NCBI GenBank assembly: GCA_000708835.1
Contig: DF237427.1
Span: 1 to 64,000 of the forward strand
Length of the DNA stretch: 64,000 bases
Reading direction: 5' to 3'
From: Klebsormidium nitens
Lineage: Eukaryota; Plantae; Klebsormidiophyceae
Under the pieces are notes generated by a model that saw nothing but the letters and a program-made list of their open reading frames with translations, had not been told where the DNA came from and searched no databases. Positions within the stretch are counted from its first letter, which is position 1, and every line of letters begins with the position of its first letter. Positions 2,082-48,486 of the stretch are shown here, piece after piece. A program made the translations under genes and the position numbers.

Positions 2082-2130
2082 ATGGCGGCATTGCCCGCGC
2101 TCTCTTCCTGCTGGCCTTCCTTTCTGCTGC
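2082..2130 (+). repeat. Degenerate upstream copy of the start codon and signal-peptide region of the purple acid phosphatase gene
   Basis: 2082 atggcggcattgcccgcgctctcttcctgctggccttcctttctgctgc aligns to 2212 atggcggccctccgcgcgctcctcctgctggccttcctggctgctgc with a 2-nt insertion. Both copies are preceded by ...gcag-N. Confidence 0.7.
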
Positions 2131-2211
2131 CCCTTTTCCCTCGTTCATCACTTCAAGGCCCAGCTCATCTTCACTCTATTCAAACCTTCATCCGTCTCTT
2201 CGCCTCGCAGT

Positions 2212-19886: not shown

Positions 19887-22800
19887 CTACCTTGTTTCAT
19901 CTTGCAAGGCTCTTGCGGCTTGCTGGATCCGTGCGCGCTCCTCAGCGACGAGCCTAGCCGCCTCGCCGGACCCACTCCCTAACTCAAGCTTCCGCTTCAC
20001 GACATCCCGGTATCCTGACACCGTATCACTCCTCGTCAAGCCCCGGGCAGTTCTTCCGAGCGGGCTCTCACCCTCACTATACTCGACCAAGGGCGACTTG
20101 GAGAGTCGCCGGTAACCATCCTCCGAGTCGGACGTCGCGGTTCCCCGCGGCACCCAGTCAGGGGACAGCATCGACTGGGAGTGATTAACTGTCCCCGGAA
20201 GAACGACACCAGGCCGGTTGCCAGTCTCCCTCCGTTCCAACACCGCGGCCGCAGCCGCTAACCGCCCCGGCGTCGAACCCTCAGCTCCTAGTGGGGGCCG
20301 TTTCGGTGTGCTCTGCTGACTCGCCGCCCGAGAGGCAGCTTGCAGACCTTTTATCGCCTCTAGTTGCTGTTGTAGCCGCTCTTCCCATTGAGCCCTCGCC
20401 TTCTGCTGTTGCTCCAACCGAGGAATCAAGGCCTCTCCCCCGGGGGCGTTCGCGAGCTCCGCCAACTCCCGGTCCTCTTCCGCCATCCGCTCGAGGTCGT
20501 TCCGGAGCTCCGCCAGAGCGGAACGGACTTCCTCTGCGTCCGCCATACTCTTGACCACCGTTTCCACACGTGCTAACCGCCCCTCGCTAGCGGCGGCCGC
20601 GCTTGCTAACGCCCGGAGCAGGCTCTCCACACCGGATTTGCCGCTCCGCTTGAACGACCGAGAAGCGGAAAGCGAGGATGACGACAGATTGTGACGCAAA
20701 GTGCTCTCCCAAGGGTCCGATGCCGCCTTGGGTCGTGCCCCGCCTTCGGCCGCGCTTCGGTCTCTCGGGGGGGGCAGATCACGGGTGTTTAAAAGGGGGG
20801 ACTCAGGGACCGGAGCAGGGGGGGGACGGCTAGCGGAATCGAGGGAGGAGTTGGGAGTGCGACGGCGGGTAGGGCTGGTGACGGACCGGAGGCGTTGCAC
20901 GACCTGTAAGAAAAGGGCGCGAAATGCTCAAAAGATGCGTTGGACAGAGAAGGCGACATGGGGGCAGTAGGTGCTGGTGGAGAATTCGCCGTAACAATAT
21001 GACGGCATGACCAGAACGGCAGGGCTCAGAGACGGTGATTTGTGTGGTGTAGAAACGAGTCTGAGGACCAGCATCCGGCGGATGTCATCCAACAAAGTCA
21101 GTTTAAAAACCACAAGCGACTAGAAAAGTCCTGCTTCAGCCAGAGCTAACAAGGAGAAGTCCCGCTGATCCTGCTCGATGACGGGCCCGGTGAGTCTGGA
21201 ACAAAGAACTCGAATGCTAGAACGCAAAACAGCATAACGGCGAATTGGGGAAAGGAAAGGTTGCACAACTGATACTGCCCTTGGAGCAATATTCAGAACT
21301 CTTGATCTCCTGCCCCTGATTTTCTAAACGAAAATCCTTGTCGACGGCCACCTGACGGCTGCGCAGGTCCTTGTTAAGCGGGAGCCCAAGTATCTCCAGA
21401 CTAGAGATAAAACCCATAAGTCTCAAAAAGCCCGTAAGACTTGACCTCTGTTTGCTCAAATCCAAAGAGACGACACACGACAGACCTGTTCTTCGACCGC
21501 CCCTCTGTCGATGGCCGCCCGTCGGCTGCGCAGCTCCTCGTCGATCTGCTGCTCTTTCAACTGCAGCCGAGCCGCCTCCTCTTGGAGACGCGCCTCCTTC
21601 TCCGCCAGCTTTGCTGCCAAGCGCTCCTGTGTTTATAAAGGCAGAAGATGAACAGTAGGTCGGGCAGAGACGACTATCTTTGAGCAATTCCTAATATCAT
21701 GGCTCCTTCGCGAAGCGTTTATTGAAGTCGAGCGTCATCAAAGACATGTATCCTTTCCTGCCAGTTTCGCTTGAGGGTGCTCCTGGATTTGGCAAACAAA
21801 AGAAGAATGTAAGGATGCGATCTCGACTAGGTATCCCATTTTCCAAATTCTGAGTGCTCATCCTCAGTGTGCGTCCCAAGCGCTGATCCTGGATCGAAGC
21901 CGGGCTATTGGAGACGCGCTTCGTATCCTGCCAGTATTGGTGGCCGAGCGCTCCTGTGTTACATGCCCGGAATTAGTGCGCCATTCATATAGTATCACAA
22001 CGTCCGCCGCGGTCAAGTTGCTAACCCTATATCAGACGTCAGAAGGACGAAATCAGTAGATCGACTTGGAAGCGACATCATGATAAAGGTTGCTCACCTT
22101 CTCTCTCGCCGCTTCCTGCTTGACCCGCTGCTCCTTATCCTGGACCGCTTTGAGCTTCTCCCGCTTCTCCTCCTCCACAGCCGCCCTCGCCCGTTCCGCC
22201 GCTTCCTTTTCCGCTTCCGCTTCGTTCCGCTCTGTCCGGGCGGACTTCCGCTCTTCCTCTATCTCTCTCTGCCGGGCCTTGACCGTCTCTTCTCGTCGCG
22301 CGAGCTCCGACCGCTTTGTCTCTAGGTCTGCGGCATGCTCGCGGAGTTCCGTCCGCTCCTTCCTGAGGGCGGAATGCTCCGAGCGGAGCCGCTCTTGCTC
22401 CTCTTCAAGCTCCGCCCACCTGTCAGGGGAAAAACATGATCTTATGCTCTTTTTTGGGAAGAAAAGTGAAAAGCTTTCCCATGGGAAAGAACCGAGCACT
22501 TGGTCGATCAATAAGCTTCGTAGCAGAACCAGAAACCAATCAGTGAGGGAAAGAGCTTTTGAAGTCCCAAAATAGCTGGCGAAGTGGAGCCAACCACCAG
22601 CTCAGCAGATTTGTCTAGCAGCGTCTCCTCCCTCAAAGGTCTGGCCGCTGTTGTATCGCCTCAATAGAGTCGAAGCTTCGAACTTACGTACAGAAACGTG
22701 TGCGTTCTTTATCACTTAGAGAGTTCCTTATCCAGCACCGCCCCTTCTACTTCCGCCTTGGCCACCTTGAGTCGCCGCGTGTCAGCTTCAAACACAATAA

Positions 22801-25800
22801 GCATGTGGGAGGGGGAGGGAACTTTGATAACGAACTCCAGAAGATTGTGCGTCGGCTTTCCTCCTCACTACTTCCGCATCCTTGTCTAGAACCGCTCGTT
22901 CCACCTCCCCCCTTGGCCGCCTTGAGTCGCCGCGTTTTCAGTTTTGAAACAAAACGAGCATATGGGCGGGGGTTGGGAACTCAACAAGGAACTCCAGAAC
23001 ATTGTTCGTCGGCTTACCTTTTAGCAAGTTCCGCATCCTTGTCCAAAACCGCTCCTTCCACCTCGGCCTTTGCCGCTATGAGTTGCAGCGTGTCAGCTTG
23101 AAGCAGAATGAGCCTCTGAAGCAAGGGGGCGGACACAGAAAAAGTAACCAAAATTTTGCGCGTCAGTTTACCATTTAGCGAGTTCCGCATCCTTGTCCAA
23201 AACAGCCCCTTCAACCTCCGCCTTTGCCGCCTTGAGTCGCCGCGTGTCCCCCTCTATGCGTTCCCTCTCCCGCGCCTGCCGCTCTGCAGTTGCCTGCGCC
23301 TCGGCGACCATTCCCCGGGCGGCCTTCAACTGCGCCGCGGCGGCTGCTTGAGTCTCGGCGACAGTTTTCTTTTCTTCTTCCTGCAAAAGGAATCAAGGCA
23401 TATTATCACTTCTCTCTACTCTTGAATCTTCGGGTGTTCAATGAGCAACCTGTTTGGCCAGGTCCAGCGCGAAAAGGTCAGGACAGATACGCTCGGAGAA
23501 GCCTACACTGCGGTGACCATTCCTGGGCAGCCTTCTATCTGAGCAGTCGCCAGCCGCTTGAGTGTTCATGACCGCGCGCTTCACGTCCTTTGATAAAGAA
23601 GACGAAACCAGTTTCCCAAGATCGCGCACTTCTTCCCCAAGCCGTAAAGCTGATCACCCTGAAACCCTTAACTCTAAGAAACATAGTCATTCCCAAAGAA
23701 AGGAAAAACAACCGATGTTAAGAATCTATCTAAGTTTGGACAGAGGACTGGGAGCAAGTAAAGGCATATGCTTATGATGGCCCCGTTCCGGAGGAATCGT
23801 CTCTGCACTTGTCCGCACTTCGGCGACCAATACCCGAACGCTGCAGCTGCGTGTTCAATTTAAATGTTTGAGCGACCAACAAAGAGGAGACAAAAGCCCT
23901 GGAAAAATGAAACAAGACTTACCAGCTCCTTTTTCTTCCCCTCCAGTTCTTCCTCCGCCCTCTGCAGCTTTGCCTTCAGCCGCGCCTGTTCCTCCTCCCT
24001 CTCTTTTCTCCTCTTCTCTAGTTGTCGCTCCTTCTCTTCGACGACCTCCAGCCGTCTCGCGGCCGCCTGCTGCGCCTCCTCCGCGCGCTCCTCCAAAGCG
24101 CGCGCGCGCTCGGCGCGCGCTTCCAGCTCCTGGCTGCGGAAGGAGGTCTTCTCCTCGGTGGTCATGAACTCCCGCTTCATCTGCATTTCAAGATGTGCTT
24201 GCTTGATTGTACGTACATGTTATTAAGAAAATCGTTTTACTTTTTCGTTATCTGTTTGAGAAGACAGGAACGCTTTGATTATGTATATTTAGACAGTCCG
24301 TTCCAAACGGTTCCAGCTCCGGGCTGCGAAAGCCGGTCTTCTCCTCGGTTCCTATGGATCCTCGCTATGTCTTTAAAGTCGGAAACGCTGGCAGTAATGA
24401 TACAGTTGCGGAAAGTGGCGGCGCTATCTGATAGAATGAAAGTCGACTTCAGACACGAACTGCCGGTTTTTTAGCTGAGGAAGGCGGTTTCCTTGGTCGG
24501 TGATACTGAATATCCCTCACATCTGCAAGCGGACTCAAAAGCGAAAGCATTTAAATTTTGCGAGGTAAGCCGAGAGGTTACGGTGATAAGAACGAGAATG
24601 TCAACACGAGCGTCGATTCAGAAAGCTTTCACCTCGCGCCCTAACTGCACAGACGGGCCTTCCACTTTGAAAAACCTCTGGTACCGGGACCCTCGGCCGG
24701 ATATATCCCATCCAATGATCCAAAAGAACATCAAAGCAGAGGTTCGCCTCAACAGTTGTGAACAAACGCCATCAAGAGCACCGCAACCAGTTACCTGCGA
24801 CTCTCTCTGCGCCATCTCCTTCTCCCGCCTCGCCATAAGTTGCTCCAACCGGGTAGCCGCTTCTTCCCGGTTAGCCACTTTCGCAGCCAGTTCCTCCACC
24901 GCTGACTCTCGGGCCCGAACCTCCGCGAGAGCCCCTTCAAGTTTCCGGGCCTCCTCTTTCGCGGCCGCCTCGCGCAGATTGGCGTCCTGTAGAGAAACGA
25001 GCTGACGTCTCAGCAACTGTCCTTTCTTAGGTTCCATACTGTTACTGCCAACTTCCGGGCACAAACGCCTGCGAGAGCCGCTTCGAGCTTTTTGGCCACT
25101 CCTTCTGCGGCCGCTTCGCGCAGATGGCGTTCTAAAAAGCAAGGAGGGGACGTTCAAGGCAAGCAGCTGGCGTCTAAGGGCATTATCGTGTTCGTCGACG
25201 TGTGTGCTTTGACGTGCGCCAGATACGCTTCGAATATCAAATAGGCAGGTCTCTTCTTTCGCGACTGTCTCGCGCGTTTTACCGCCTAAAGACGTTGTGT
25301 GAGCGCAAACTAAGGTCAGCGTATGTCACAAGTCTGGTGCCCTGGATGTGCATCAATCACGGCTTCGCATCCGCCGACAGCCGCCTTCAGAGAGTGTCCG
25401 GACGAGCAAAGAAAGGTCATTAGAGAGCATCAGCGTATCGACGCAGCAACGCATGCAACCACCGAGCTCACTGAAGAGAAGAAGCGAGCGAACTGCAGTG
25501 GAAGCTCTCGCAGCCGCTCTCTCACAGCAAGCTCTTTGTCACTTTGCCTCCCGCCTTCTCTGGGTTTGATTCGTACTTTGATTCGTAGTTTGATTCGTAG
25601 TTTGATTAGTAGCTGCAAGTATATGCTCCTAATAGATTGGAATTTTTGGACTGCGAAGCCAATCACAAAATCGGTCGCACGCTCTTCTGTCATAGCAGCC
25701 AGCCCTTCTTTTCGCTAAGCTGGTCGCTTCCGCTGCTGCCCACTTCGGCTTTCCAGCAGCTGAAACCTTCCCCAAACCAGAGCGGCAAGGCTTTCATAAG

Positions 25801-28800
25801 GAGTCCCGATCTTAGAGAGCATTCTCACCTGCTCTCTTTTCCTCGCGGCCAGCTCTTTCTTCTCTGCTATGCTTCCCGCCTCCGCTGCTGCCGCCTTCAA
25901 CTTCTCGGCCGCCACCTTTTCGTCCAGTGCCCGCTCCTCTGCTTTCCGCGCCTCGGATCGCAGAGTCTGTCCTTCTAGTTCCAGCTGAAGAGAGCAGACA
26001 AGGAATGACGTCAGAGAACCCGTCATGGTCTGTAGCTTGGGAACCATTTCGAGCGCGAAGGTCGTGATTACGGCCGTTTGAAGAGCCGAGAGAGAAGCTA
26101 CCCTTCAATGCCCACCTCTGTTTCACAAGGCGTGACACAAGCATGTGAGGAGTGCTGCTTGTTCAACTCTCAAACGTGTCTAACTCCCGCTTTGCTGCAC
26201 AGTTTCAGTGTTCAAGACCAGGAGTTTAGAGGCCCCAAGGGCTCGACGGGGTGCATTGCGATCGATTAGACGTGTTCCAGCCTCCAATGCTACTCATACT
26301 TGATTCCAATGCTTTTCACATCATTCAGAAGAAGGTAGTCCTTCCATAACCCGGTTGACTATCGTCTCTGGGTCATAAAAAACGTTCCTCGTGCCTTTGC
26401 GAGGAGAAACTTTTCAAACAGTGGCGACAAGCCTCTTTTTGGATTCTCTGAAAGAAACGCTGGTTGTCTCGCGCGCTCTCGTCGATTTTTGCAGTGTCCT
26501 GGAGCTTTCCCCCTGACCTGGAGATCCTGAGATAGAGTTGAGCAACCTTTGGTTCAGCAGAATAGAAAGCGACTCGCTCCTCACCTCGTCTCGATCTAGC
26601 CGCAGCTTGTCCTGTCCGCTCTTGAGCGCCCTCTCCCGCTCTTCGCACTTCTCTTCCCGCACTTTCATCAGCTCGCTGCTCCCTATAGCGTCCCGTTTCA
26701 AGCGCTCCTCTTCCGCTGCTACTGACCGCTCCCGCCTGGCGACTTCCGCTAAAGCAGTGCCAGTTTCAGCGCGTTCTTTCCTCGCTGCTTCCAACGCCAA
26801 ACGACCCTCTGCAGAGCGGGAAGGATCGATGTTTAGGCCTGCTTTTCTTCTGATGATACTCAGCTTTTTATGCTTGGAGTTTTAGGTGTAACATCTCTTT
26901 TTCTGCTGTTACTGACCACTCTCGCCGTGCCACCTCAGCAAGGACGGTACCAGTCTCCGCGCGTTCTTTTCCGGCGGCTTCTAAAGGCAGACGACCCTCT
27001 GGAAAGAAAAGAAACATCTAGTTTGGAGCTATTCAGGGTGTAGATTAGTCTCCGTTCGATGTTTCGAGCCTTCTGACAGATGGCTCTATTGCTGTCACTG
27101 ACCGCTCCCTTCTTGTGACTTCCGCCAGACCAGTTGCGCTTCAGAGCGTTTTTTCCTTGCGGCTTGGAACGCGAGACGACCTCTGCAAAGATCAAGGGAT
27201 GTGATTTTCGGACTTTTCGAAATATTGGATACTTTGTTCCAACGCTCGAGCTTTTGGTTAACGGGTCTTCATTTGCTGCCACGGACCGCTTTCGCCGCGT
27301 CCCGTCACCAAGGGCGGTACCCGCCTCAGCGCGTTCTTTCCTAGCGGCTTCTAACGCCTGACGACCCTCCTGTTTAAGGTTGGAAAGGAGGTTTGAGATA
27401 AGTTGCGTGCACATTTCGTGTATTTGAGGAACGCAAACGGCTTTTCTTCCGCCCATACCGAGCGCCCTCGCCGTGCCACGTCAGCAAGGGCAGTGCACGT
27501 CTCAGCGCGCCCTTTTCGTGCGGCTTCTAAAGCCGGACGTCAATTTGGAAAGAAAGAAGCAACTATTCATGGTTTGAATGGTCCGGGTATACGGCTTTGG
27601 CTTCTGGTGCACCGCTCCTCTTCCGCTGCTACATAACGCTCCGGTCGCGCCACAACCGGGCGATTGTCTTGCGGCTTCATACGCCAGACGACCCTTTGAT
27701 CGAGGTTGGGAAGGGCAATCTGACAACTGAATAGGATGACGGATTCTGCTTAATGGTTAATGGCACCTCGTGTGAGCGACTAGACACTCCTGCCGGGCCA
27801 CCTCGGTATAGGCGACTGGCTCAAAATCTCTTTTTGCGCCGCTTTCAGAGCGGCTGACATGATGAACGTTACGACGAAGCAACTTTTGGGCAAGAGTAAC
27901 TCGTAGGGGTCAGGCGACTTTGACGAATTTGCAGCCGCAGCTTACAAAACATAAATACAAACGGGTCGAGATAGCGGAAGTACGCACCACGGATTCTTGA
28001 ATCCAGGCTGACCAGCCTCTTTTCCCGTGTGCGGTTTCCACGATCAGGGGACGATCAACTGAAACAAACCGGATGGTCCGGCTTTCTAAAGATAACGACA
28101 GCAAAAACGTTGCCCAAGTGAGGGGAGCCACGTGCCCTTACCTGCCAGCATCTTGGCAGCCTTCTCCTCCCGTCGCGCGTTTTCTTCGCCCATTGACTCC
28201 TCCCGTGCCTCGATCTCCCGCTTCAGCGACTCCATCTCCTTGCTCTGGAAAAACAGAAACGCGGTGTCAATGTAAGAGATGCTCAAACATGACTTGGGAC
28301 TGGATCTGAAGTGCGACGTTGTTGGACGGACGGTCGGCCAGCATCTTTCTTTCAGCGACTCCATCTACTCGTTGAGGAAAGCAGAAATGTGGTGCCAAAG
28401 GAGCTGGTCTGATTTGGATCACAAGAGAGGGTTGCCGTTAGAGGACTCTCTCGTTGAGCAGGAACCGAGAAGAGAGGTTTCGCTCCCGAAACACCCTGAA
28501 AAGAGAGTTTTGTCACACGATTGTGATAGTGACCAGCTTCGAGATCAGAAACGTCGTTGTGGAGGTCGTCCGTGTTGAGAACCGGGTTCTCCAGCAGAGA
28601 CCGCCCGGTCGAAGCCAACGAATTTGCGGTGGAAAGTACCGGGATGGCTCCCGCTGTATCTTAGCCGCTCCTCCCCTTCCTTGGACGTTCTGCCGGGACT
28701 TTCGCAGTCGCTTTCAAAAGCCGACTACTTTTGAAGCTCTGACATGTTCAGCGGGCAAATGGTAAAGGGAACAAAGAACAAACATGTTTTTTTCGTTGTC

Positions 28801-37800: not shown

Positions 37801-40800
37801 GTATATACACTCCTTATCTCGACAAATTCTTGCAACAAGCGGTCTTGTTTCGACAAATCCTTATGACCCAAAGTGGGTTTTAAAGGAAGGACGGGCCAGC
37901 CGGTAAGCTTGATTCTCACCTCCTGTTTTGCGGTTAGCGTCTTATCCCACTGGGTTAGTCGTTGCGTGTCGTTTGCAATGCGGTCGCGCTCTGCAGTCAC
38001 CTCTCTCTGCCGTACGGAAACCTCCTCGGACGACGCTCGGACACGTGCTTCGTGGTCCGACACCGACTGCAAAATCGTACATACATTATCAATCATCCGG
38101 CATTTCACAAGGTGGCAGTATGTATAGTATGACAGTCTAGCAGTCATCATCTTGCTTTGCGGGGCAGGAGACGGGCACTTGACATAAGTTCGCGCTCTGC
38201 GCTGAGCTCTCTTTGTCATACGGAGACTTTTTCGGACGACGCTCGGACACGTGCTTCGTGGTCCAAACCGACTGCCAAAGGGAACACGATTTTGTCCGGA
38301 CTTTTCAGCAACCCTGGCGATCTGAGACTCGAGAGTCATTTAACGATGACTTTGCTTTGCAGGACTGTGCTTTGGTGTTCAAGAATGGATTGCGCGATCG
38401 ACCAGAGATTGTCTGGACTATGCAAGATTCCTATCTGGCAGGCAATGGAGATATTTTGAGGGTTTCTGCTTTGCAGGGCAGAAGACCTTTCGACCGTCTC
38501 CTTGCCGGTTGCTGAGATGCTGAGACGAATTTGCAGCCTTCTCGCATTTAGTACAAAGAACGGATTTAGAACAGGGCGGAACGAGACGGCTTTGACTCGA
38601 ACGAGTCAGTTTGCGGTGCGCTGGTTCGGACAAGGCAAGAAGCCCCTCAAGGCATGGTTCCGACGAATTTAAGCTTGGAAGAGCATTTGTAACAGGAAGA
38701 TGAAGCGAAACTCCTCATATTGGATAAGCGACGTTCCATTGAATCAAAGAGTCCTCGTTCAGCGAAACAAATGCTGAGAATCAAGGGGAAAGGTGAACTG
38801 TGGGACGCTCGCGTGCAACTCGTCACGATCTTCCTGCAAGCTGCAGCAGTCATCTCAAACAAAGACATGCTTCTAGAGTCTGTCTTCCTTTAAGAGGAAG
38901 TGGGGATGGAAGCGAAAGCGCAATTTGAGCGGAACCGAGTACGGAAGCGGAAGCGGAACAGGAACAGGAAATAAACCGGAACTCACCGCCGCAATCGCGT
39001 CCCTCCGCCTCGCCTCCCCGCTGAGCAGTCTCAAGAACTGAAGCCGTGAAACGGAAGCAGTGGAAGCAATAGAGAAACATCAGCGGAAGCGGCCCCGAAA
39101 CCGGAAACGGAACCGGAAACGGAACCGGAACTTACCGCCGCAATCGCGTCCCTCCGCCTCGCCTCCTCGCTGAGCAGCTTCGCCCACCGCTGCAGCGCCT
39201 CCTCCCGCCGGACCAGCTCAGCGGCCGCCACGTGGCGCCCAACCAGAGCCTGCCACGTGTCGTCCCCTCCTTTCTCCGCCTCTCCCTTTCCGACTTCCGC
39301 GAAGAGGGGCTCGGCGGAGTAGCCCAGGTCTTCCAGCCGTAACGGAACGTGGCCTTTTCGACCCGGCGGCAAGTGGGAACCATATCCGTCTTTGATCTGA
39401 CCTCGCTCTAGTTCCCACGCCTTTCTGCTTCCTTGGCCCTCTGATTCCTGAGAATGGACAACCATCTTTGCCGCATTCGGAACGGCTCCGTCAGCACCAT
39501 CGTGCCTTTCTTCTCCGCTCGGCATCCGGTTTTGAGCTTCGCCCCACCGGGCCGATTTTGCCGCTTGTCGACCTTGGCCATTGGGATTCAGTGTTTCTTG
39601 AGATTGAGCGCCGCGTGTTTTTTGAGATTGTGCGTCGCTCAAAGATTCTAGATTCCGATACTCTCCCCACGCCGCGTCGCTTGAGGGTTCAGGGTTTTGG
39701 GCTCCGACCCACCGCTCCCCGGTTTGCGACTCGCGCCTCGCAAGCGCGCCCAACGCTTCCTTCACAACAACCGCTGCTTTCTCGATCTCGGCCCTTTCTT
39801 TCGTCGCCTTCTCCGCGTCTCTCCTGGCGTCGTTTCTCAGCCGTTCGATTACCTGGCGCTCGGCGGAGACCTCGTTTCTCTCGCGCGCTAGTTGCGCCTC
39901 CTTGGCTTCGAGTTCGGAAGTCCGGGCTTCGGCGGAGGTGTGAACGCGCCGTGCCCGCTCCTCCTGTTCTCTTGCTAATTTGGCAGCGCTGCTGGCCTGA
40001 AAGGGCAGCAGAACGAAGCTTGTGAACAAGAAGACCTTCTGCTGACTGTCAAACCTGCAAAAACGAAACGTTCAGACGAGCACCGCTCTTCATTCCTCTA
40101 GTTCAAGTTGCCGTGATGCCAAATAGAAAATGCAGCGCAGGTGCTGGACTGGGGCGAAATTGGCGACGAATCATTGGGACCATAATCCGCTAGCTCGACT
40201 TCGACCACCTTCCCGCTGCACTGTTTCAAAAGCCATTTCTCCTTACCGAGCAAACTCGCTAATGATAGGTTAAAGCGGACTTTGCACTCTTTATTGACGG
40301 TCGCACTTCCTGCCATTCGTTCAACGCAGCCTGGCGGCCTGGTAAGCCAGTTTCGCAGAGCTCTGGACTCGAACCTCAGAATTTCATAGTTGTCTGCCGC
40401 CATTGGTCGATGTCTTTGCTTACTTCGAAGCCCAAGCAGTAAGTTCACGAAACCCGAGACACAAGCTCCCACAGACTACAGCTCTTTGCGTCAAACTTAT
40501 CTTCAAGTGCCTGGAGCATGGTCCTCCATCTTGGAGTCCAATCAAATTGGAAAGATATGCGACAACTCGAGATGCGTAGCAATACAAAAAAGATCATACG
40601 TGTTGATAGAAGGATGAAACAGACAGCGGTAGTGCGGACAAATTGAATCAACCCACCTGCGCTGCCTCCTCCTTGGCCGCACGTTCCCGCTCCCCCACAA
40701 CCCTCTCCGCCTCCCGCACCCTCTCCTCTCTAGTTTCCACCTCGCGCTCTCGTTTCTCTGCGCGCTTGCGCGCCTCCTCCAAGGCGCGCGCGCGCTCCTC

Positions 40801-43800
40801 CGCTTCGACCGCCGCGATCCTTACCGCTTCTTTTTCTTTCGCAAGCTCTTCTCCCCGCCTGACTAGTTCTTCCCGCGTGCTTGCGGCGGATCGCGCCGCG
40901 CGATCGAGCTCGGACGCGCGCGTCATGGAGGTGTGTTCGCGTTCGCCGAGGTTTTTCTCCCGCTCCTCTAATTTGGCTTGGAGGACTGCCAGTGCGGCGG
41001 AGTCCTTCGAGAGGCGTTCGGAGCGGGAGGCGACGTCGGACTCGCGGGCCGAGAGAGATGTCTCGAGCTCGGACTGAAGACGACTGAGTGAAAATCAGTG
41101 AACTGACAAGGAAGGCTGGAAGCAGAAAGTTTCGGACCAAAGCCGTCAGATTTTGGTAGAAGGGCGGATAGCAAGGCATAAAACTCGCTCGAAGCGTGCT
41201 AAGAACAATCTTGAGCAGAGTGTCAGCAACAACAAGGTAAGGGGAATGGTTTCAAGAGCTTCGGCTAATGCGGCCTCTCTTAAAAGGGAAAAGATGGGGC
41301 GAGTGAACCTTCAGAAACAAGATTTTGATTAGAGAGTACGGACATCAAGGATGCAAAGGAGATGTAAATATCATGCGCTTCTAGGCTTTCAATTGGGACC
41401 CTTGTCTGTTTGATTTGGACGGTACGTCCGCCGATTCCCAACGCGCCTCGCTATCATGAAGTAAAACAAAAATTCTGAGGAAAGGACTGAAATGAACATG
41501 AAGTCGTTCTGGGTCCTTACCACCTTCTTGTCTGCTACCGCCTCCTCCCTTCTAAGCCGCTCCTCCCACTCTGTCAGCACCGCTTCCCGCTCCTCAATGT
41601 GCCTCATCGCTTCCGCTCTTACTTCTTTTCGCCACTGTTCCATCCCCTCCTCCTGAGCCACTAGCTCCGCGGCACGTGTCTGCACCGCACGCCGTTCTGA
41701 CAGAACGGCTGCCGCCTCTGCTTTCGTGTCGGCAGCTTCTTGAAGGGCGGCCAAAGCAGATGCTTGGATCTCCTCCGCCTGGTGGACCAGCAGAAAGTAC
41801 ATTCAGCTTTCGTTTTGAAAGAGAACAATCGTGATCTAGTTATTGGAAGCACGTGTCTGCACCGTGCGCCAGTTCTGACAAAACCGCCGCCGCCTCCGCT
41901 TTTGTGTCAGCGGATTCTTGGAGCGCCGCTAGAGCCGATGCTTGGATCTCTTCCGCCTGAATCAGGGAAAGAAAGGTAGTGAAACGCCTCTAAATTTCGC
42001 CTTCGAATTTTAGTCCAAAATCAAGTTGTCCTGTCGATCGCAGAGGTGTGTGTTTCCACACCGCGCCGTTCTGACAAAACCGCCGCCGCGTCCGCTTTTG
42101 TGTAAACAGCTTCTTCGAGCGCTATTAGGGCAGATGCCTTCAATCCCTACGCCTGTGGGCAGAAATGAGATGAGTAATTCTCTTGTTGAAATCATTCGCC
42201 TTGAGGTACTCTCGGCGGCACGTGTCTGCACCGCACGCTGTTTTGACAAGAACGTTGCCGCCTCCTCTTTCCTGTCGGCGGCCTCTTGGAGCGCCGCTAG
42301 AGCGGATGCCTCAATGTCTCCTGCCAAGAAGCATTCATACAAACCAACGTCACCTTTCCTTCGAAATAGCAAACGCCTAAACTGCTAATCTGTGGAGCTC
42401 TTGCACCTGAAGAGACAACCGACAAGAGTTCGTTGCTAAGACCAAAAACGAGCCCCGTGCAACTATATCGGAACGTCACTCGGGCCTCTTAATGCTGCAC
42501 CCAGGATGTGTTCGACGGAGTTTTCGAAACCTACGACAAAGGCAGGGAGTATAGGATATCATCGGAAATTATCGAGTTCGTACTTAAGGAATTGCAGACT
42601 GGCCATGCAACATCCTGGAAGCTAGATTGAGGTGCCCGAATCAGGCTTTCAGGCTGCTGATGACGCCCCTTCCCTTACCTGCTGTTTCGCCTTCCGTGCA
42701 GCCTCTTGCGCCTCCCCTAGTTCCTTCCTCTTCTTCACCGCCTCCTCCTCCCACTTCGCCTTCGCTTTCGCCCAGTTCTCCTCCCGGTCCGCCAGTTCCC
42801 GTTCCGCCACGCTCGTTTTCCGCCGGAATTCCCTCAGCTCCCGTTCGAGAGCTTGCTGTTCGGACGCCATTTCTGCGCGCGCTTGCTCGCGCTCGACTTC
42901 GAGGCGCGCTTTCATCGCGCCCCGCTCGCGGATCAGCGCGGCGAGTTCCTCATTGGCGGATTCGACGGCCTGGCGAAGGCTGGCGGCTTCCTCGCGAGCG
43001 CCTGGAATGAAGAGGGTGACGCAAGAATCGTTTTTGCAAGTCTGGTAACTAAAGAGTGACTTAACAGCGGGGTGACTTAAGATAAGCACCCGGGGGACGG
43101 GTGGGGTTAGCATGGTGGTTAGGGTGGGTTCGGGTGCGGAGCGGGTGATTATCTGGGTTAGGGTTTTTAGTTTGTTTGGTCGGGGATTGTGAATCTTAAG
43201 TCACTCACCCGTTAAGTCACCCCGGAGTTACCAGTATGTTTTTGCATCGTAGTTTCGCAGGCTGTAGCGCCTCTTCGTGGCCCGCCGCGAAGTAACACGC
43301 AGATTGCGTTTCCGGAATCGACGGCCTGTCACCATCGCGGGGCATCCTTATGGGCACCTTAGGTAGAGTTGGTCATGTCAGAAAGTCCATACAACAAGGT
43401 GGCAACATATAACACGGAGACAACGGGATGAGTCTTCTAAAGTACACGCTTGTGGAGTCGATGGACGTCCTGGCGCAGGCGGGATGCTTCCTCTCGCGCA
43501 CCTGGTAAGAAATGATGGTCATTTACAAACTTAAGTGACAGTTTCCCAGATTCTTATTGTTCCTAGCGCCCCACTTTGAAACAAAGCGCCTTCATCGCGC
43601 CCCGCTCTCGGATCAGCGCGGCAGGCTCACAGAGGCGGGACGGCTTCCTCCCAAGCGCCTGAAGGAGACGATAACGTGAGCTGATAGGTTGCATAAGAGG
43701 CTCGAAATTTGGTACGGCTCCCGCGCGACTTGAAGGCAGAGCGATTTTTTGGAACACACTAATGGTCCGGCGGATTGACTTTTCCCTTAGCCCACGCGAC

Positions 43801-46800
43801 GGCCTGGCGCAGGAGTGAGGCTTCGCTCTCTGCACGGTGAATACGGTGTTGGGAATGGAGGACGTACCAAGTAATCTGGCGAGCTGCTGGAGGGAGGGAG
43901 GAGACAAGGATTCAAGACTCGTCACGGTCGCAAGGTCCTTGTGCGTGGACAGAAAGAGAAAACAAAGGCGGGGACACGTTCTCGTACGGACATGCTGAAC
44001 CCAAAAGGAGATGTGGGGTCCGGACATTCTCGCTAGACGAGGAGAACGACGCGCAGAGCTAGGAGTTCACAAAGTTCGTCGAACGACTCGACACCTGACC
44101 TTCTGTACCTTCGCACCGAGATGACAATCATTCTCACCTGCAAGGATACGCTCCGCCTGTGTTTTCGCCTCTTCTCTCCCCGCCCTCGCAGCGCTCTCGG
44201 CCGCCACTGCTGCGGCGCGGGCCCTATCTGCTGCGGCCGCCTCCGCCTTCATTCGTCGCAGGTCGTCCTCTATCGAGCCTCGATTCCCGTCCAACAGCTT
44301 CGCCTGAAGAAGAAAAGGTAGACAATTTGGTGGACCTACTTAAGCGTGAACTGCGCTGCCGCATTCAACTTCGCGTTCGACTGTGGCAAATCTGTCGCCA
44401 ACCATTGTCCACATTTCTTCCAACTTTGCCCGTGGAAAGCGGAAAAGATAGAGGGACCAGCGCAAATGTGTGGCGTACACGAAACGCGGAATCCTGCAGC
44501 TGATCTTTTGGAGGTATTGTTCGTCTTAGCCTTCAGATTGTTGCAGCAAATTTGTCTGCAATTCGCCTCGTTCAATTATGGCACCTGCAGAACGATAGGG
44601 ACAGTGCTGATATCAAGCCGCACCCGTACCACAGCACCGTCTCGCACCGGGACTCTTTCCGAGTTTATTTTGTTCAACCTGAAGCCCACGGCCACAAAAT
44701 CTAGACTCTGACGTCCGGGTAGCTAGACACCAAAAGACGGGAGCGAAAATGGAATTACATTTTCCGGAGCGCACCTGCATGGACGCATCCTGCATCGCGG
44801 CTTCCGCCCGCTGCATCTCCCTCTGCACCGCCACCTTCTGCTTCTCGATCTCCGCCCGACTTTCCGCCAGTCTCCGCTGCGCGTCTCTCTCTGTTCCTTC
44901 CAGTAACGCCTGGCGTTCCGCCAGCCCCGCTTCCCGTTCCGCTAAATTGGACTCCAGTGCTTGGACACGTGCCCACGTCGAGCGGAGCTCTTCCTCGGCG
45001 GCAGCACGCGCGCGCTCTGCCTCGGCGCGCAAAGATTCAGCGGCAGTGATCATCTCGTCGGCGACCTGCAGAGTTAACGGACAGTTATTCGCCCAAGTAC
45101 GGTAGAGCGACGGATTGAAAGAAACGAGGACCGGACAACAAGTGGAGTGGCGCGCGCGCGCTCTGCCTTGGCGCGGAGAGATTCGGCTGCGGTGATCATC
45201 TCGTCGGCGACCTGCGGGAGAAAACGACGCTCTTATTGATCGCTCACTCACGGAAGAAAGCTTATTGAGAAAGTCAAGCACTATACAATGAGAGAAGTTC
45301 TTTCTGGTGGCGCACGGGCGCGCTCAGCTTCTGCGCGGAGGGACTAGGCTGCGGTGATCATCTCGTCGGCGACCTGCAGAGTCAAGGGACCGTTACTTGG
45401 TCGCCATCCACGGTAAGAAGCGGATTAACGAATTCGAGCACCATACAACGAGAGGAGGTCTTCTCAGCTTAGCGCGTGCGCGCTCCGCTTCGGCGCGGAG
45501 CGATTCAGCTGCCGTGATCGTATCGTTGGCGACCTGCAGAGTCGAGGGCCACCAACTCGGTCGCCCAGAAGCGGATCGAGAAATCGAGCGAAGAAATAAG
45601 CAGAGTTCCTTTTTTAGCGGCGGCGTGCGCCCTGCCTTGGCGCGGAGCGACTCCGTTGCGATTATCATCTAGTCGGCGACTTGCGAAGTCGATTGCCAAA
45701 CATGTGCTCCCCCACCCACGGTAGCGACAAGAATGAGAAATCGTAAACGAGCGGAGCTGTTCCGATCGGCGGCCCCACACGCCCGCTCTGCCTCAGCGCG
45801 GAGCGATTCAGCTGCGGTGATCATTTCGTCGGCGACCTGCGGGGGAAATTGATAGCCATCTGGTCGCCCCCAGTATGACAAGCGACTCGAAGAGATCGAG
45901 CCACGTCTCTTGATCGGGATGGAAGACACAATGGCAACGTAGTATCGGGATGAATCGAGTAAGAAGAGAACAGGTGAAATTGCAAACCTTGCGGCGAGAA
46001 GGAGCTTTGGAGACCGGAGTTGATTGTTGCGACCTTTGCTGTATTGTACTTTTCAAAGGTTATTGACCAGGACGAACTTTGTTGGTGGTGATGAATGGAG
46101 TCGGACCACTCTGAGATCACACACTCCGGGTGCGTCTCCCTTGCTTATGACCAGAACAAGCTTTCGTGACTCTTCCCGTCAATAGTCCAGCTTAGCGACC
46201 AACTCTTTTAAAGTGTTTCTTTCAAGCTTACCCACCGCATATAGAGGAGGCCCCTTTTCCGGAGAATTTCAAACGACGTTGATCAAGCATAACAAGAGAA
46301 TGAGGCTACCGCCTCAAACACACCAGCTCATTCTCGGCAGCCGCTTTCTCGCTGACCTCCAGCATATGCGCCCTGACTCCTGATCACACTCCCAGAAAAT
46401 AACAAAACCCTCGACTTCTCCAAAACTTCGATGACTTCCACCACGAACCAGAAGTAGAACAAGATTACTCCTCTGGACTCACCAGCTCATTCTCGGCAGC
46501 CGCTTTCTCTCTGACCTCCAGCATATGCTCCCACGCAGCCAGCTTGCTCCGGTCACTTCCCCCCTGGATGTGAAAAGCCGCGGTCTCTAGTTGTTGCCGG
46601 GCCGCAGCCAGCTTGGTTTGAACTCCGTCTTTGGGGTTCTTCACCCCGGGACCTAGCACAGTGGACACTGCAGTATAGGTTGCCGACCGACAACGAAAGC
46701 ATTGGAGTCGTGGGTCAGAGTCATTCAGTAGAAATGTGCCACAGCATGACACACAATGAAGATTGAAATTTCTTTTGCAAAGAATAATCGTACGTCATAC

Positions 46801-48486
46801 CACCGACTTGAGATGTCCCAATATGGGCCCCAATATGCTACGACACCAGGTCCCAGGACGGTCCCGCTTCCGCTTTTGCAGAACTTATCCCCTCGCGAGC
46901 GGTCCTTCCTCGACGCCCAAGCAAAGGCGCTTCTATACGTACTAAGCTTACTCATTCATATAAGACCTCACCTCTTTGAGCGACATGATGATGGTCCCCT
47001 TCTCCCCACGCAGGCTGTTCCGCGCCCCTCCTCTGCTGCCGCTCTTCCTGGTGTGAATACCCCCTCTCTCCGCGTCCATCGAGGTGTGAACTGGCACCAT
47101 CCTGGACCTCACTTCGCTGGCCCCCCTGCCAAGAGTTCGCTTGCACTTTCTGCTGCAGCTCCTCCAATAAGTCCGCAGAATGCGCCTGACCAGCGGCACG
47201 GTCGGCCCCCCTTTGAGTTGCACGACGTTCAAATGACGCCCACTGAGAAAAGGTTAGAACCAAAGCTTAGGGCCACAGGTTAGAATCAAACCAACATCGA
47301 GCGTGTAAAGCTTTTGCTTATCCAGTAAATGCGCTGTACGGGTCTGTCCGGCTGCACGGTCGGCCCCCCCCGGAGATTCAAAGACGCCCGCTGAGAAAAA
47401 GGTTCGAACCAAAGGTTAGGGCCACAGGTTAGAGCGAGAGGTTATGCCAAACTAACACTGAGAATGTAAACGTTTTCGCTCCTCTGAATCCGCTGTACGC
47501 GCCTGGCCGGCGGCACGGTCGGCCCCCCACTAAGTTGCGGGACGCTCAAAGGACGCCACCTGAGGAGGTTAGAACCAAAGTTTAGGGCCGAAGGTTAGAG
47601 CCAAAGGTTCGAGCGAAACCAACACTGAGAGTGTAATTCTAACGCTGCTTAACGAAATTTGCTGTATGGGCCTGGCCGGCAGAACGATCGGCCCCCCTTG
47701 GAGTTGCGCGAATGACGCCCGCTGAGAAAAAGGTCAGGACCAAAGGTTTGAGCGAAAGGGTAGAGCCAAATCAGCGGTGAAAGTGTAAACCCTTTGCTCC
47801 TATGATCAGTTAGCAGTGTGTGGGCCTGGCCGGCTGCACAGTCCGCCCCCACTGGGTCGTGCGGCGTTCGAAGGACGCCCACTGAAAAATGATTATAACC
47901 CAAAGGTTCAGAGTTAAAACCTAGAACCAAACCAACATTGAGAGTTGAAACCTTTGACTCTTCTGAAAAGTCAGGCACATGCCTGGCATGGGAGGTCGGC
48001 CTCCCGCTGAGTTGTGTGGCGCTCGCACGACGTCCACTAAGAAACAGGTCAGAACCAAAGGTTGGCGCAAAAGATTCGACACAAACCAACACCAAACATA
48101 AAGACCTTTGGCGCCTCTAACAAGTCCGCGGTATGCACCTGGCTGGCAGCTCGATCGGGGCCCCTCTAGGCGGCGCTACATCCAAGAAATGGCATCGTGC
48201 TAGGCAGTTGGACATGGACTGGACTAAAAGCAGTCAAATGCCCGAAAACTAAAGTCTGGTTGAGGTTCGTGGGATTGTGTGCGTCATGATCAAGCATAAT
48301 GGCATATCTCCTTCCGGGATGAGCAAGCTAAAGGCAGAGGGCACCTCAAAGAAGGCTTCGATGGGATAAAAGTGCTTAAAAATACGGACATGATGCTCTC
48401 ACCTGCTTCTCTAGCTCCTCAAACTTGAGGAGAGCCGCGTCGGCCCCCGACGGCAGCTGGGTAGCTACGTCCCCCTGGGAGCCCAT
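19887..48486 (-). CDS. Giant E/A/R/K-rich coiled-coil protein of unknown function, 30 exons, about 2683 aa
   Basis: Exons 5' to 3': 48486-48403, 47242-46972, 46667-46483, 45065-44775, 44303-44138, 43001-42679, 41778-41521, 41073-40657, 39996-39136, 38066-37920, 37428-37267, 36490-36343, 36064-35796, 35229-34990, 34566-34280, 33677-33515, 32883-32659, 31874-31686, 31187-30751, 29594-29426, 28970-28833, 28244-28142, 26808-26585, 25984-25829, 24986-24795, 24180-23923, 23380-23172, 22419-22098, 21626-21486, 20903-19887. All introns are GT-AG and phases match at every junction; total 8052 nt. It starts MGSQGDVATQLPSGADAALLKFEELEKQ and ends RARIQQAARALQDETR. A few donor choices are ambiguous by 1-2 codons, and small missed exons are possible. 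Confidence 0.85.
22715..23235 (-). repeat. Tandem array: 3' end of exon 27 plus donor region, 1 functional and 3 decayed copies
   Basis: Anchor ccttgtcc/cctt at 23191 (exon), 23037, 22880 and 22726; spacing 154, 157, 154. Copy 2 still encodes AAKAEVEGAVLDKDAELAK and keeps an AG|gtaagc donor at 23017. Confidence 0.9.
25564..25612. repeat. 12-bp minisatellite, 4 copies, in intron 24
   Basis: (g/c)tttgatt(c/a)gta four times. Confidence 0.85.
26700..27700 (-). repeat. Tandem array: acceptor region plus 5' end of exon 23, 1 functional and 5 decayed copies
   Basis: Anchor acgaccct at 26801 (exon), 26991, 27176, 27361, 27537 and 27688; spacing 190, 185, 185, 176, 151. The copies translate to variants of GRLALEAARKERAETGTALAEVARRERSVAA. 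Confidence 0.9.
29520..30150 (-). repeat. Tandem array: acceptor plus 5' end of exon 20, 1 functional and 4 decayed copies
   Basis: TGCAG acceptors at 29595 (used), 29720, 29867, 30007 and 30144; spacing 125, 147, 140, 137. Intronic flank cagacattccgttga is also repeated. Confidence 0.9.
31790..33260 (-). repeat. Decayed copies flanking exons 17 and 18 (5' copies of exon 18; both 3' and 5' copies of exon 17)
   Basis: Exon 18 5' anchor cttcc(t/a)(g/t)ag at 31871, 32059 and 32237. Exon 17 5' anchor accgctcc at 32832, 33019 and 33201. An exon 17 3' copy at about 32500-32590 encodes ERDVASKGAECAEREETMSRLL. Confidence 0.85.
34202..34246. repeat. (AAACC)n microsatellite in intron 15
   Basis: aaaccaaaccaaaccgaaccagaccaaaccaaaccaaaccaaacc: 9 units, 2 imperfect. 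Confidence 0.95.
41690..42330 (-). repeat. Tandem array: acceptor plus 5' end of exon 7, 1 functional and 3 decayed copies
   Basis: Anchor gatgc at 41759 (exon), 41937, 42133 and 42305; spacing 178, 196, 172. The outermost copy still reads IEASALAALQEAADRKEEAATFLSKQRAVQTRAAE. Confidence 0.9.
43042..43234. mobile_element. MITE-like element, about 193 bp, with 40-bp imperfect TIRs and a G-rich core, in intron 5 of the coiled-coil gene
   Basis: Left end ctggtaactaaagagtgacttaacagcggggtgacttaag versus reverse complement of the right end ctggtaactccggggtgacttaacgggtgagtgacttaag. The internal core is shared with 61181-61255. Confidence 0.7.
44990..45850 (-). repeat. Tandem array: acceptor plus 5' end of exon 4, 1 functional and 5 decayed copies
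   Basis: Copies of VADEMITAAESLRAEAERA start at 45065 (exon), 45211, 45373, 45533, 45680 and 45836; spacing 146, 162, 160, 147, 156. All keep CAG acceptors except 45680 (CAA). Confidence 0.92.
47180..48190 (-). repeat. Tandem array: acceptor region plus 5' end of exon 2, 1 functional and 5 clear decayed copies (a sixth is faint)
   Basis: AG acceptors at 47243 (used), 47391, 47560, 47722, 47882 and 48037; spacing 148, 169, 162, 160, 155. Each unit has about 60 nt of exon-like sequence (cggtcggcccccc core) plus intronic aggttagaaccaaag repeats. Confidence 0.9.

Follow-up and report, generated by a model that had tools for sequence, protein, structure and literature searches.

Decayed tandem copies of exon edges recur in the introns of a coiled-coil gene of Klebsormidium nitens

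The window analysed here, a stretch of 64,000 nucleotides from Klebsormidium nitens (contig DF237427.1 of assembly GCA_000708835.1), carries a 30-exon gene encoding a coiled-coil protein (Table 1). No Pfam match was obtained, in a Pfam scan, for the C-terminal domain of the predicted product or for five other ORFs of the window, and ~50-aa exon-internal tandem repeats are absent from the protein beyond generic coiled-coil similarity. Exons 2–7 and 18–23 (12 exons, 11 introns) are confirmed by RNA contigs from four runs, and the introns confirmed in this way are GT..AG on the minus strand. The other 18 of the 30 exons rest on modelling, a length check and conservation in an orthologous gene, not on direct RNA joints: exons 8–17 come from a dynamic-programming model whose total length is an exact fit to an 8,812-nt RNA contig once an intronic copy that can pass for an exon is left out, exons 24–30 are based on conservation in the orthologue, and the acceptor position of exon 26 was set with RNA, the length check and the orthologue together.

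The introns of this gene contain what we call echoes, an echo being a decayed tandem copy of the adjacent exon edge or splice junction that lies inside an intron. A sequence-only reading of the window had reported junction copies in at least 22 of the 29 introns. Self-BLAST and nhmmer bear this count out, placing echoes in introns 1, 3, 5, 6, 9, 11–20, (21), 22 and 24–29, that is, 22–23 of 29 and every intron listed previously. That reading had also called for a self-comparison in which junction-straddling duplications are set against purely intronic ones. Self-BLAST placed 23 clusters of local direct repeats, spaced at 88–206 nt, in the part of the gene from 21.3 to 48.2 kb; all 23 include a real exon edge and none is purely intronic, whilst the 35 kb of the window outside the gene hold just three small repeat clusters. 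When 58 exon edges (120 nt each, exon sequence only) were compared with the 29 introns, 48 HSPs fell in the adjacent intron and four elsewhere, the latter being weak matches of 15–28 nt. Profile searches with nhmmer gave 53 matches in the adjacent intron against one in a non-adjacent intron (E<=0.01), and an adjacent match for 26 junctions at E<=0.1. As had been proposed, the arrays thus stem from many local duplications that arose independently, none shared between junctions, and are not members of one mobile family.

Both of the forms described earlier are present, with ~18 arrays on the acceptor side and eight on the donor side of exons, each made up of one to six echoes. The copies are direct and lie head-to-tail beside their source, with the junction contained in them and with multi-unit alignments of up to 788 nt; most have AG or GT at the homologous position. 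Unit length ranges from 88 to 205 nt (median 158), the exon part accounting for 30–115 nt, and copies differ from one another by 5–30%. Each array has one fixed exon-side boundary, which points to a single founding event followed by array dynamics. Identity to the exon does not fall monotonically with distance from it, which argues against a simple ‘conveyor belt’. The intron-derived parts of the units, or spacers, show homology in five arrays, those of exons 2, 4, 20, 23 and 27 (z up to 13), but in most single echoes spacer homology is not detectable, even though the exon parts are 75–97% identical. Spacers diverge faster than exon-derived parts, a difference that we ascribe loosely to indel-prone pyrimidine tracts and to conversion. 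Recognisable arrays cover 8.15 of 20.6 kb of intron (at least 40% of the intron DNA of the gene), and the median intron is 752 nt long with arrays and 516 nt without.

Table 1. Coordinates of the coiled-coil gene, its echo arrays and the echo in the neighbouring PAP gene (positions in the window)
Feature	Positions	Strand	Details
Coiled-coil gene, 30 exons	19887..48486	-	CDS 8,037 nt, 2,678 aa
Exon 2 acceptor array	47158..48186	-	6 echoes, spacing ~151-171 nt; fills most of intron 1
Exon 3 donor echo	46318..46532	-	50-nt exon tail + GT, 96% identical, 159 nt downstream
Exon 4 acceptor array	44979..45848	-	5 echoes, spacing ~146-162 nt; AG kept in 4/5; RNA joint 45063->46481
Exon 6 acceptor array	42906..43824	-	3-4 decayed echoes; 37-nt patch (95% identical) in one
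Exon 7 acceptor array	41665..42325	-	3 echoes, spacing ~177-196 nt; skipped by RNA joint 41777->42678
Exon 9 donor echo	38907..39177	-	42-nt exon tail 98% identical; spacer only ~70%
Exon 10 acceptor echo	37984..38279	-	spacing 205 nt
Exon 12 acceptor echo, intron 11	36587..36667	-	nhmmer E = 4e-14
Exon 13 acceptor echo	36023..36252	-	spacing 152 nt
Exon 14 weak echoes	34838..35408	-	donor side 34838-34937 (E = 9e-3); acceptor side 35322-35408 (E = 2e-5)
Exon 15 donor echo	34083..34365	-	spacing 192 nt
Exon 17 echoes	32357..33254	-	donor side 1-2 copies, spacing 156 nt; acceptor side 2, spacing 187 nt
Exon 18 acceptor array	31766..32231	-	2 echoes
Exon 19 acceptor echo	31119..31383	-	spacing 196 nt; RNA joint
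Exon 20 acceptor array	29531..30299	-	5 echoes, spacing 125-154 nt; RNA joint 29594->30751
Exon 21 acceptor echo	28942..29066	-	spacing 88 nt
Exon 22 acceptor echo, weak	28222..28398	-	spacing 129 nt; E = 0.002
Exon 23 acceptor array	26703..27851	-	5-6 echoes, spacing 156-187 nt
Exon 24 donor echo	25681..25898	-	spacing 150 nt
Exon 25 acceptor echoes	24910..25275	-	1-2 copies, spacing 146 nt
Exon 26 5'-part echo	24118..24349	-	spacing 190 nt
Exon 27 donor array	22708..23248	-	3 echoes, period 154 nt
Exon 27 acceptor echoes, weak	23497..23851	-	nhmmer
Exon 29 echoes	21339..21960	-	donor side (spacing 167 nt) and acceptor side
PAP (purple acid phosphatase) gene echo	2077..2258	+	acceptor + ATG + signal-peptide start, copied 130 nt upstream

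The pattern is not confined to this gene. The orthologous gene, found on a metagenome contig from a different sample, is equally loaded: 23 exon-edge queries yielded ~40 echo copies, some of them at junctions without echoes in the present gene, and the intron positions that bear arrays are all common to the orthologue. The same kind of echo occurs in K. nitens KFL_001360110, and the PAP gene, in whose introns no obvious arrays had been noted, in fact carries one (Table 1). Only two such echoes were found in ~57 kb of neighbouring and control DNA. The idea of a locus-specific junction hotspot therefore holds in part: the bias towards exon edges is borne out by the founding arrays (below), and echoes are much denser in the gene and its orthologue than in the ~57 kb of controls, but the echoes are not specific to the locus.

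The bias might be no more than the mark of selection, with tandem duplications of ~160 nt arising uniformly and only those that are neutral to the mRNA persisting, the null model offered by the sequence-only reading. Such a filter certainly acts, in that whole-exon and exon-internal duplicates were not seen anywhere in the gene and the intron part beside the live exon is never shorter than ~59 nt, which leaves room for a branch point and a polypyrimidine tract. Purely intronic duplications are also harmless, however, and a simulation combining uniform duplication with survival leads one to expect 48% of survivors to be of this type. None of 25 founding arrays is purely intronic, at most one small cluster of 21 is so in the orthologue, and the introns and spacers of the ~57 kb of neighbouring and control DNA yielded no such duplications. 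The probability of 0/25 is 7e-8; allowing for a two- to threefold easier detection of anchored arrays raises it to between 7e-5 and 1e-3. Survival alone thus fails to explain the lack of purely intronic duplications of echo size, and we regard it as an unlikely explanation of the arrays. As a separate candidate we considered a hairpin or cruciform formed at junctions by the pyrimidine tract and the purine-rich exon; DNA folding of 160-nt windows (-22.3 kcal/mol at acceptors, -18.7 at donors, -18.9 in introns and -26.7 in exons) gave no junction-specific structure.

The manner in which the echoes have decayed bears on whether they serve any purpose. Changes unique to one echo amount to 7.7, 6.5 and 11.7% at codon positions 1, 2 and 3, whilst exon-unique changes number 4, 0 and 15. 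With the orthologous exon as outgroup, 33/42/49 changes at the three positions fall in the echo lineage and 11/4/39 in the exon lineage, and the same polarised test made inside the orthologue gives 86/78/108 and 15/10/55, respectively. An apparent ‘synonymous recoding’ of the echoes (12.7/9.1/31.7%), which would have meant coding constraint upon them, was rejected on this basis: the third-position excess maps to the live-exon lineage and arises because the live exon drifts at synonymous sites, a result replicated within the orthologue. At 39 third-position sites the orthologue agrees with the echo and not with the live exon. GC-biased conversion was likewise rejected as the driver of third-position change in exons, the directions of change being mixed. 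Codon position 3 is still mildly over-represented among echo-unique changes (1.65-fold, p = 0.012), which we attribute to GC-rich third positions being more mutable and to uncertainty over the oldest echo of each array, although weak constraint is possible.

At the RNA level, the main mRNA in four runs drawn from several studies skips all of the echoes, confirming the earlier view that the innermost copy is the functional one. The sole echo site seen in use is an acceptor at ~27182 in the exon 23 array, used at ~4% in one run (depth 2.3 versus 58), in evidence that consists of assembled contigs, which drop rare isoforms, such that low-level or conditional use of echoes could escape. Might the arrays nevertheless constitute a functional bank of decoy or alternative splice sites, or of poison pseudo-exons, through which the splicing or NMD of a very long transcript would be controlled? 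Most echo acceptors retain a good pyrimidine tract and AG, one of them is used as just described, and several echoes are readable as in-frame pseudo-exons. Yet AG is intact in 24 of 31 acceptor echoes where ~25 would be expected from ~10% neutral divergence, decay is nearly even over codon positions, the sites are essentially unused in RNA contigs and the sets of echo-bearing junctions differ between the two species. The signature of recursive splicing or of decoy exons, a regenerated AG-GT together with a conserved site, was not found among the echoes: those that start with GT occur at exon 4 only and make poor donors, AG retention is neutral and, again, the junction sets differ. The suggestion of a splice-site bank made from the sequence therefore fares poorly, and we consider such a function very improbable.

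A further proposal, that the arrays are an adaptive gene-conversion reservoir from which echoes donate variants to the coiled-coil exons, has one element in its favour. In two donor echoes (exons 3 and 9) the exon parts are 96–98% identical to their source and the spacers at most 70%; in the exon 20 array it is the third echo from the exon that most resembles it (93.5%), and the patch in one exon 6 echo (Table 1) is of the same nature. This patchy identity suggests that conversion between exon and echo occurs. Nothing shows a function, however: neither a direction nor a benefit is evident, the echoes contain frameshifts and stop codons, and the changes in the exon lineage are of the ordinary synonymous kind. 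Conversion is thus the part of the proposal that we retain, and the chance that it is adaptive appears slimmer even than that of a splice-site bank.

That genuine small exons, belonging to a repetitive protein or used in a mutually exclusive manner, were misread as intron is scarcely credible. Our first dynamic-programming gene model did take five echoes as in-frame exons, and the exon 17 acceptor echo at 32942-33067 can be read as an in-frame 126-nt pseudo-exon. RNA joints skip the copies, however, and the length of the 8.8-kb RNA contig leaves no room for the 126-nt echo exon, which is accordingly absent from the mRNA; moreover, the echoes are partial exons with a single splice site each, and their unit lengths are not generally multiples of three. 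Translated in-frame extension of exons was rejected as an origin for the arrays, with just 4 of 21 units a multiple of three and with stop codons and frameshifts present, as was copying from spliced cDNA, since what lies upstream of echo acceptors is a pyrimidine tract homologous to the true intron end and not the upstream exon. An assembly artefact, rightly thought unlikely at the outset, or a mobile element family can be discounted, for repetitiveness itself is all that speaks for either, whereas the copies differ by 5–30%, echo regions are matched, with 0–1 mismatch, by intronic RNA contigs of low depth that come from independent studies, each array matches its own exon only and the orthologous contig from a different sample has the same architecture.

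We therefore favour, with a probability of roughly 0.7, the view that local tandem duplication across splice junctions has occurred repeatedly and that the echoes are what it left behind, without function, decaying neutrally and enlarging introns. This view takes as its starting point features that were directly observed: the anatomy of the arrays, the splicing outcome, neutral decay, recurrence in two species and a strong exon-edge bias. A duplication would copy a segment of ~90–205 nt (median 158) spanning a junction, and the duplicate would survive because the partial exon copy has no partner splice site and because the spliceosome stays with the copy that adjoins the exon body (of the acceptors the one furthest downstream, of the donors the one furthest upstream). 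From a two-copy junction, further duplication or unequal exchange with the live edge, along with patchy gene conversion, could then drive growth and turnover of the array; neutral decay of the echoes would go hand in hand with synonymous drift of the live exon. An array would in effect be a time series of fossil exon edges, and the net outcome would be intron growth.

As regards the mutational mechanism, and the reason why this gene is richer in echoes than its neighbours, we can only infer. Our best guess is that a chromatin- or replication-sized unit (approximately one nucleosome or Okazaki fragment) sitting on the exon edge is duplicated, perhaps by fill-in of staggered single-strand breaks, with selection removing exon-internal events. 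In a bolder form, to which we give somewhat less than even odds, a duplication process of this algal lineage is physically targeted to exon edges, copies about one nucleosome length across junctions and is a major undescribed driver of intron growth, with the arrays forming a dated fossil series of ancestral exon sequence. Such a targeted process could be tied to nucleosomes positioned on exons, lagging-strand units or co-transcriptional splicing.

Intron growth is usually put down to transposons and random insertions. In this gene, at least 40% of the intron DNA consists of copies of its own junctions, and the copying is found in two species with a regular unit size and an exon-edge bias beyond what survival alone would give. 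Should the bias prove mutational, chromatin, replication or splicing would be linked to a specific structural mutation, offering a testable route to intron expansion. The arrays also amount to a natural experiment on splice-site choice, in which the site attached to the exon body prevails over dozens of pseudo-acceptors and pseudo-donors that are still intact, and to a built-in fossil record for polarising exon evolution.

Our search of the literature found no report of pervasive junction-anchored arrays, but several known systems resemble them in part. Introner elements, or intron-generating transposons, add intron DNA to many genes of some algae by inserting one sequence family at many sites. 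Like them, the echoes extend introns by stretches of about nucleosome length; unlike them, each array derives from its own adjoining exon and no common family exists. Tandem exon duplication gives rise to clusters of mutually exclusive exons, which are complete, alternatively used and under coding constraint. Here too exon sequence and its splice sites recur in tandem within one gene, but the echoes are partial, absent from the mRNA and changed near-uniformly over codon positions. Short tandem duplications are also known to arise from staggered nicks, one on each strand, with the distance between the nicks setting the length of the duplicated segment; for the echoes this is a candidate mechanism only, and it leaves a nick spacing of ~160 nt round exon edges unaccounted for.

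Other parallels involve splice signals themselves. Intron gain by tandem or segmental duplication across AGGT, the Rogers model (Hellsten et al. 2011, PMC3265369), has been described for potato RdRp (PMC4974935) and in Drosophila (PMC2891723). It shares with the present case a local, locus-unique tandem duplication of splice signals that is tolerated since splicing removes the extra copy. Those are isolated cases in which a new intron appears within an exon, whereas here existing introns have been enlarged repeatedly and at most junctions; no former exon was found to have been split by a new intron bounded by duplicated AGGT sites, and the intron positions are common to the orthologue. A further likeness is to the minisatellite of intron 7 of the human F7 gene, a 37-bp VNTR whose first unit spans the exon 7/intron 7 boundary (PMC1557585). 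There, the first element of the array is the real junction, a row of silent pseudo-donors, identical or similar, follows and the site nearest the exon is used (PMC1557585). The same is true of the echo arrays, in which the authentic junction is the first unit and the pseudo-sites are silent save for the ~4% use seen in one run. In F7, nevertheless, just one locus is involved and its 37-bp unit is confined to the donor side, whereas here ~26 junctions of one gene are affected, on both sides and with units of ~160 nt, and the pattern recurs in the orthologue and in other genes.

Self-BLAST of the window identified 23 clusters of local direct repeats in the 30-exon giant gene, compared with three small clusters in the other 35 kb, and all 23 include a real exon edge rather than being purely intronic. 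When each of the 58 exon edges was represented by 120 nt of exon-only sequence and searched against all 29 introns, 48 alignments fell in the adjacent intron and four, short and weak, elsewhere. Profile searches with nhmmer (E ≤ 0.01) gave 53 adjacent matches and one non-adjacent, bearing out the claim of the sequence-only reading that each array is unique to its own exon, and also recovered outer, more decayed copies at even spacing (six each for exons 2 and 23, for example). With all evidence combined, 22–23 of the 29 introns contain these decayed tandem copies of the adjacent exon edge (echoes), including every intron named earlier. Around 18 arrays are acceptor-side, comprising the intron end, AG and the first 29–114 nt of the exon, stacked upstream; around eight are donor-side, with the last 42–87 nt of the exon, GT and the intron start stacked downstream. 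The distance to the nearest copy is 88–205 nt (median 158, SD 27). Recognisable arrays make up 8.15 of the 20.6 kb of intron (40%), median intron length being 752 nt with arrays versus 516 nt without. Other studies yielded low-depth RNA contigs from introns that show 0–1 mismatch to echo regions, and copies differ by 5–30%, so that an assembly artefact, already thought unlikely, is not credible.

The G+C content of the window is ~52% and its plus strand is C/T-rich between ~20 and 48 kb, as expected for a minus-strand gene. Four public runs supplied RNA contigs that map to 26.5–32.4 kb and 41.7–47.7 kb and confirm 12 exons and 11 introns with CT..AC plus-strand ends (GT..AG on the minus strand). 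The other exons come from a dynamic-programming gene finder trained on the RNA-confirmed exons, with the exon 26 acceptor set from the orthologous contig. An 8,812-nt RNA contig from one run (X9) demands exactly 3,053 exonic bases between two RNA-mapped stretches, a requirement satisfied by the model only without a 126-nt ‘exon’ that is an echo; three more echo ‘exons’ chosen by the gene finder were ruled out by RNA contigs. The final model has 30 exons and a CDS of 8,037 nt, encoding a long coiled-coil protein of 2,678 amino acids. Exon 9 (861 nt), for which the sole support is the transcript length check, encodes a middle region of ~200 amino acids that is not coiled-coil and is rich in G, S, Q and W. 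An RNA contig reaches 743 nt upstream of exon 2, compared with a coding exon 1 of 84 nt, and there would therefore be either a long 5' UTR or extra upstream exons past 48486. A Pfam search with the C-terminal 337 amino acids gave no match. Among 1.84 billion representative proteins the giant protein has just two relatives, a metagenomic ORF and K. nitens KFL_001360110, indicating that the C-terminal domain is a lineage-restricted family. KFL_001360110 is a short gene (187 amino acids) that has this domain alone (63% identity).

Coordinates of features in the window and at related loci
Feature	Sequence	Position	Strand
Giant gene	window	19887-48486	-
PAP echo	window	2077-2258	+
Purely intronic PAP minisatellite (period ~42-49 nt, 3 copies)	window	7217-7352	
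Dispersed repeat, copy	window	17870-17978	-
Dispersed repeat, intron 5 copy	window	43039-43143	
A>G difference in RNA, intron 5 copy	window	43085	
1-nt deletion in RNA, intron 5 copy	window	43122	
Dispersed repeat, copy	window	61164-61255	+
Exon 26 acceptor	window	24180	
Used acceptor of second exon 23 echo	window	near 27182	
Echo rejected as 126-nt exon	window	32942-33067	
Microsatellite, start of intron 9, within exon 9 donor echo unit	window	39084-39131	
Exon 9	window	39136-39996	
Region of 5' RNA extension	window	47243-48486 and upstream	
KFL_001360110 locus	DF237085.1	10001-12142	
Equivalents of exons 18 and 19	orthologue, rebuilt coordinates	12392-13495	
Minisatellite, period 33 nt	orthologue, upstream part	2373-2703	
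Minisatellite, period 22 nt	orthologue, upstream part	5893-6217	

The orthologous gene was rebuilt over 39 kb (exons 5–30) from a 53.6-kb metagenome contig. Its exons are 70–87% identical to those of the window gene, with third positions differing at 42%. Across orthologue exons 10–30, 20 of 21 repeat clusters lie at exon edges, and the upstream 9.4 kb contains 18 further repeat families, clear acceptor and donor echoes among them. Affected junctions are only partly common to the two genes: exon 15 and 16 acceptor arrays are found in the orthologue only, whereas those of exons 19–22 are either confined to the window gene or different in the orthologue. The duplication process therefore ran independently in both lineages. 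Orthologue introns also contain ordinary minisatellites unrelated to exon edges, and the counterparts of exons 18 and 19 fall within a single unbroken tblastn alignment, where the intron between them may have been lost or be open to read-through.

Applied to 57 kb of control DNA, comprising a 22-kb K. nitens locus and all of the window outside the giant gene, the same repeat tool found one echo-like family. It copies the acceptor, ATG and beginning of the signal peptide of the purple acid phosphatase (PAP) gene, in whose introns no obvious arrays had been noted. BLAST adds one acceptor echo, with a spacing of 178 nt, at exon 2 of KFL_001360110. The pattern is not unique to the giant gene, but it is very unevenly spread. 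The proposal of a locus-specific duplication hotspot focused on junctions holds in part: none of 25 founding arrays is purely intronic and the giant gene and its orthologue are far richer than the control, but echoes in PAP and KFL_001360110 count against specificity to one locus. A short dispersed repeat of a different kind, in intron 5 and at two other sites in the window, has RNA depth 2–3 times that of the gene; many contigs continue into unrelated sequence and the RNA differs by one substitution and one deletion. The repeat probably represents a small interspersed element, with transcripts arising at many loci.

The null model offered earlier was a survival filter, in which junction-straddling duplications persist because they leave the protein unchanged. 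Such a filter clearly acts, as the intron part beside the live exon is never shorter than ~59 nt and the giant gene contains no whole-exon or exon-internal copies. In a simulation, duplications of 160 ± 27 nt were scattered uniformly over the giant gene with arrays removed, and events that fell within an exon or took in a whole one were dropped. Purely intronic events made up 48% of the survivors, compared with 0 of 25 founding arrays observed (P = 7e-8; allowing for anchored arrays being 2–3 times easier to detect, 7e-5 to 1e-3). The filter also leaves the upper size limit of ~205 nt without explanation, and is not enough on its own to account for junction-spanning echoes. A hairpin-at-junction idea was tested and rejected. 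Just downstream of the PAP exon ending GHVHAYE lies a purely intronic minisatellite: short-period intronic repeats exist, therefore, whereas ~160-nt intronic ones do not.

Within each array all echoes have one common exon-side end point, implying one founding duplication per array. Differences common to subsets of echoes are overwhelmingly at third positions (50 of 63), so echoes took live exon sequence at different times instead of being copied from old echoes. Identity to the exon does not fall steadily with distance (for exon 20, 93.5% in the third echo and 86% in the first), and in the exon 3 and exon 9 donor echoes the exon part is 96–98% identical, against 70% at most for the spacers where they align at all. 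Taken together, these patterns point to unequal exchange with the live unit and patchy gene conversion; a simple conveyor belt of copies is inconsistent with them. Spacers in larger arrays are homologous (z up to 13), yet more diverged than the exon-derived parts; provisionally, we put this down to pyrimidine tracts being prone to indels and to neutral change on both sides. Much of the spacer divergence of the exon 9 donor echo is due to a TTCCGG / TTCCGT-type microsatellite.

It had also been suggested that echoes form a bank of decoy or alternative splice sites. The dominant mRNA in all four runs joins every exon via its innermost site and skips all echoes. Among echo sites, use was observed solely for the second exon 23 echo, whose acceptor has a depth of 2.3 in one run versus 58 for the main joint. 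AG is intact in 24 of the 31 acceptor echoes aligned through the junction, many keeping a good pyrimidine tract, and GT in three of five donor echoes; ~25 of 31 AGs would be expected intact at ~10% neutral divergence per site. Echo splice sites are neither preserved nor purged. Much the same is seen in the human F7 intron 7 minisatellite, where intact pseudo-sites were shown experimentally to be silent, the site attached to the exon body being chosen (PMC1557585).

Differences between echoes and exons affect 12.7% of first, 9.1% of second and 31.7% of third codon positions. A reading as ‘synonymous recoding’ of the echoes gave way once these differences were split per lineage. Where an array has at least three echoes, 7.7%, 6.5% and 11.7% of positions 1–3 carry a state private to a single echo, and the live exon has 4, 0 and 15 private states. 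When the orthologous exon serves as outgroup, changes number 33/42/49 on the echo lineage and 11/4/39 on the exon lineage; at 39 third-position sites the echo still matches the other species and it is the live exon that has changed. Repeating the test within the orthologue, with the window as outgroup, gave 86/78/108 versus 15/10/55. Echo decay is almost uniform over codon positions and therefore neutral, and the surplus at third positions comes from ordinary synonymous drift in the functional exon. Echo-unique changes retain a mild third-position surplus (1.65-fold, p = 0.012), consistent with GC-rich third positions being more mutable and with uncertainty over where the oldest echo is rooted; weak constraint on the echoes is a less likely source. 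Unit lengths are divisible by three in 4 of 21 cases, with no enrichment, and stop codons and frameshifts are present. Skipping in four runs, neutral AG retention and near-uniform decay all argue against the splice-site bank, and a function as a gene-conversion reservoir is without support.

We consider it fairly likely (probability roughly 0.7) that a recurrent duplication process with a bias to exon edges enlarges introns and has left the echoes behind as neutral fossils. Our leading guess is that a nucleosome- or Okazaki-sized unit might be duplicated at exon edges after staggered breaks. By their defining tests, echoes are neither mutually exclusive exons nor introner-type mobile elements nor recursive-splice sites, and full-text literature searches turned up no account of junction-anchored ~160-nt arrays across a whole gene or genome. 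Tandem duplication across splice signals is a known route to new introns (PMC3265369, PMC4974935, PMC2891723) and human F7 provides a known boundary-spanning minisatellite (PMC1557585), but these are isolated cases, whereas the echoes described here are gene-wide.
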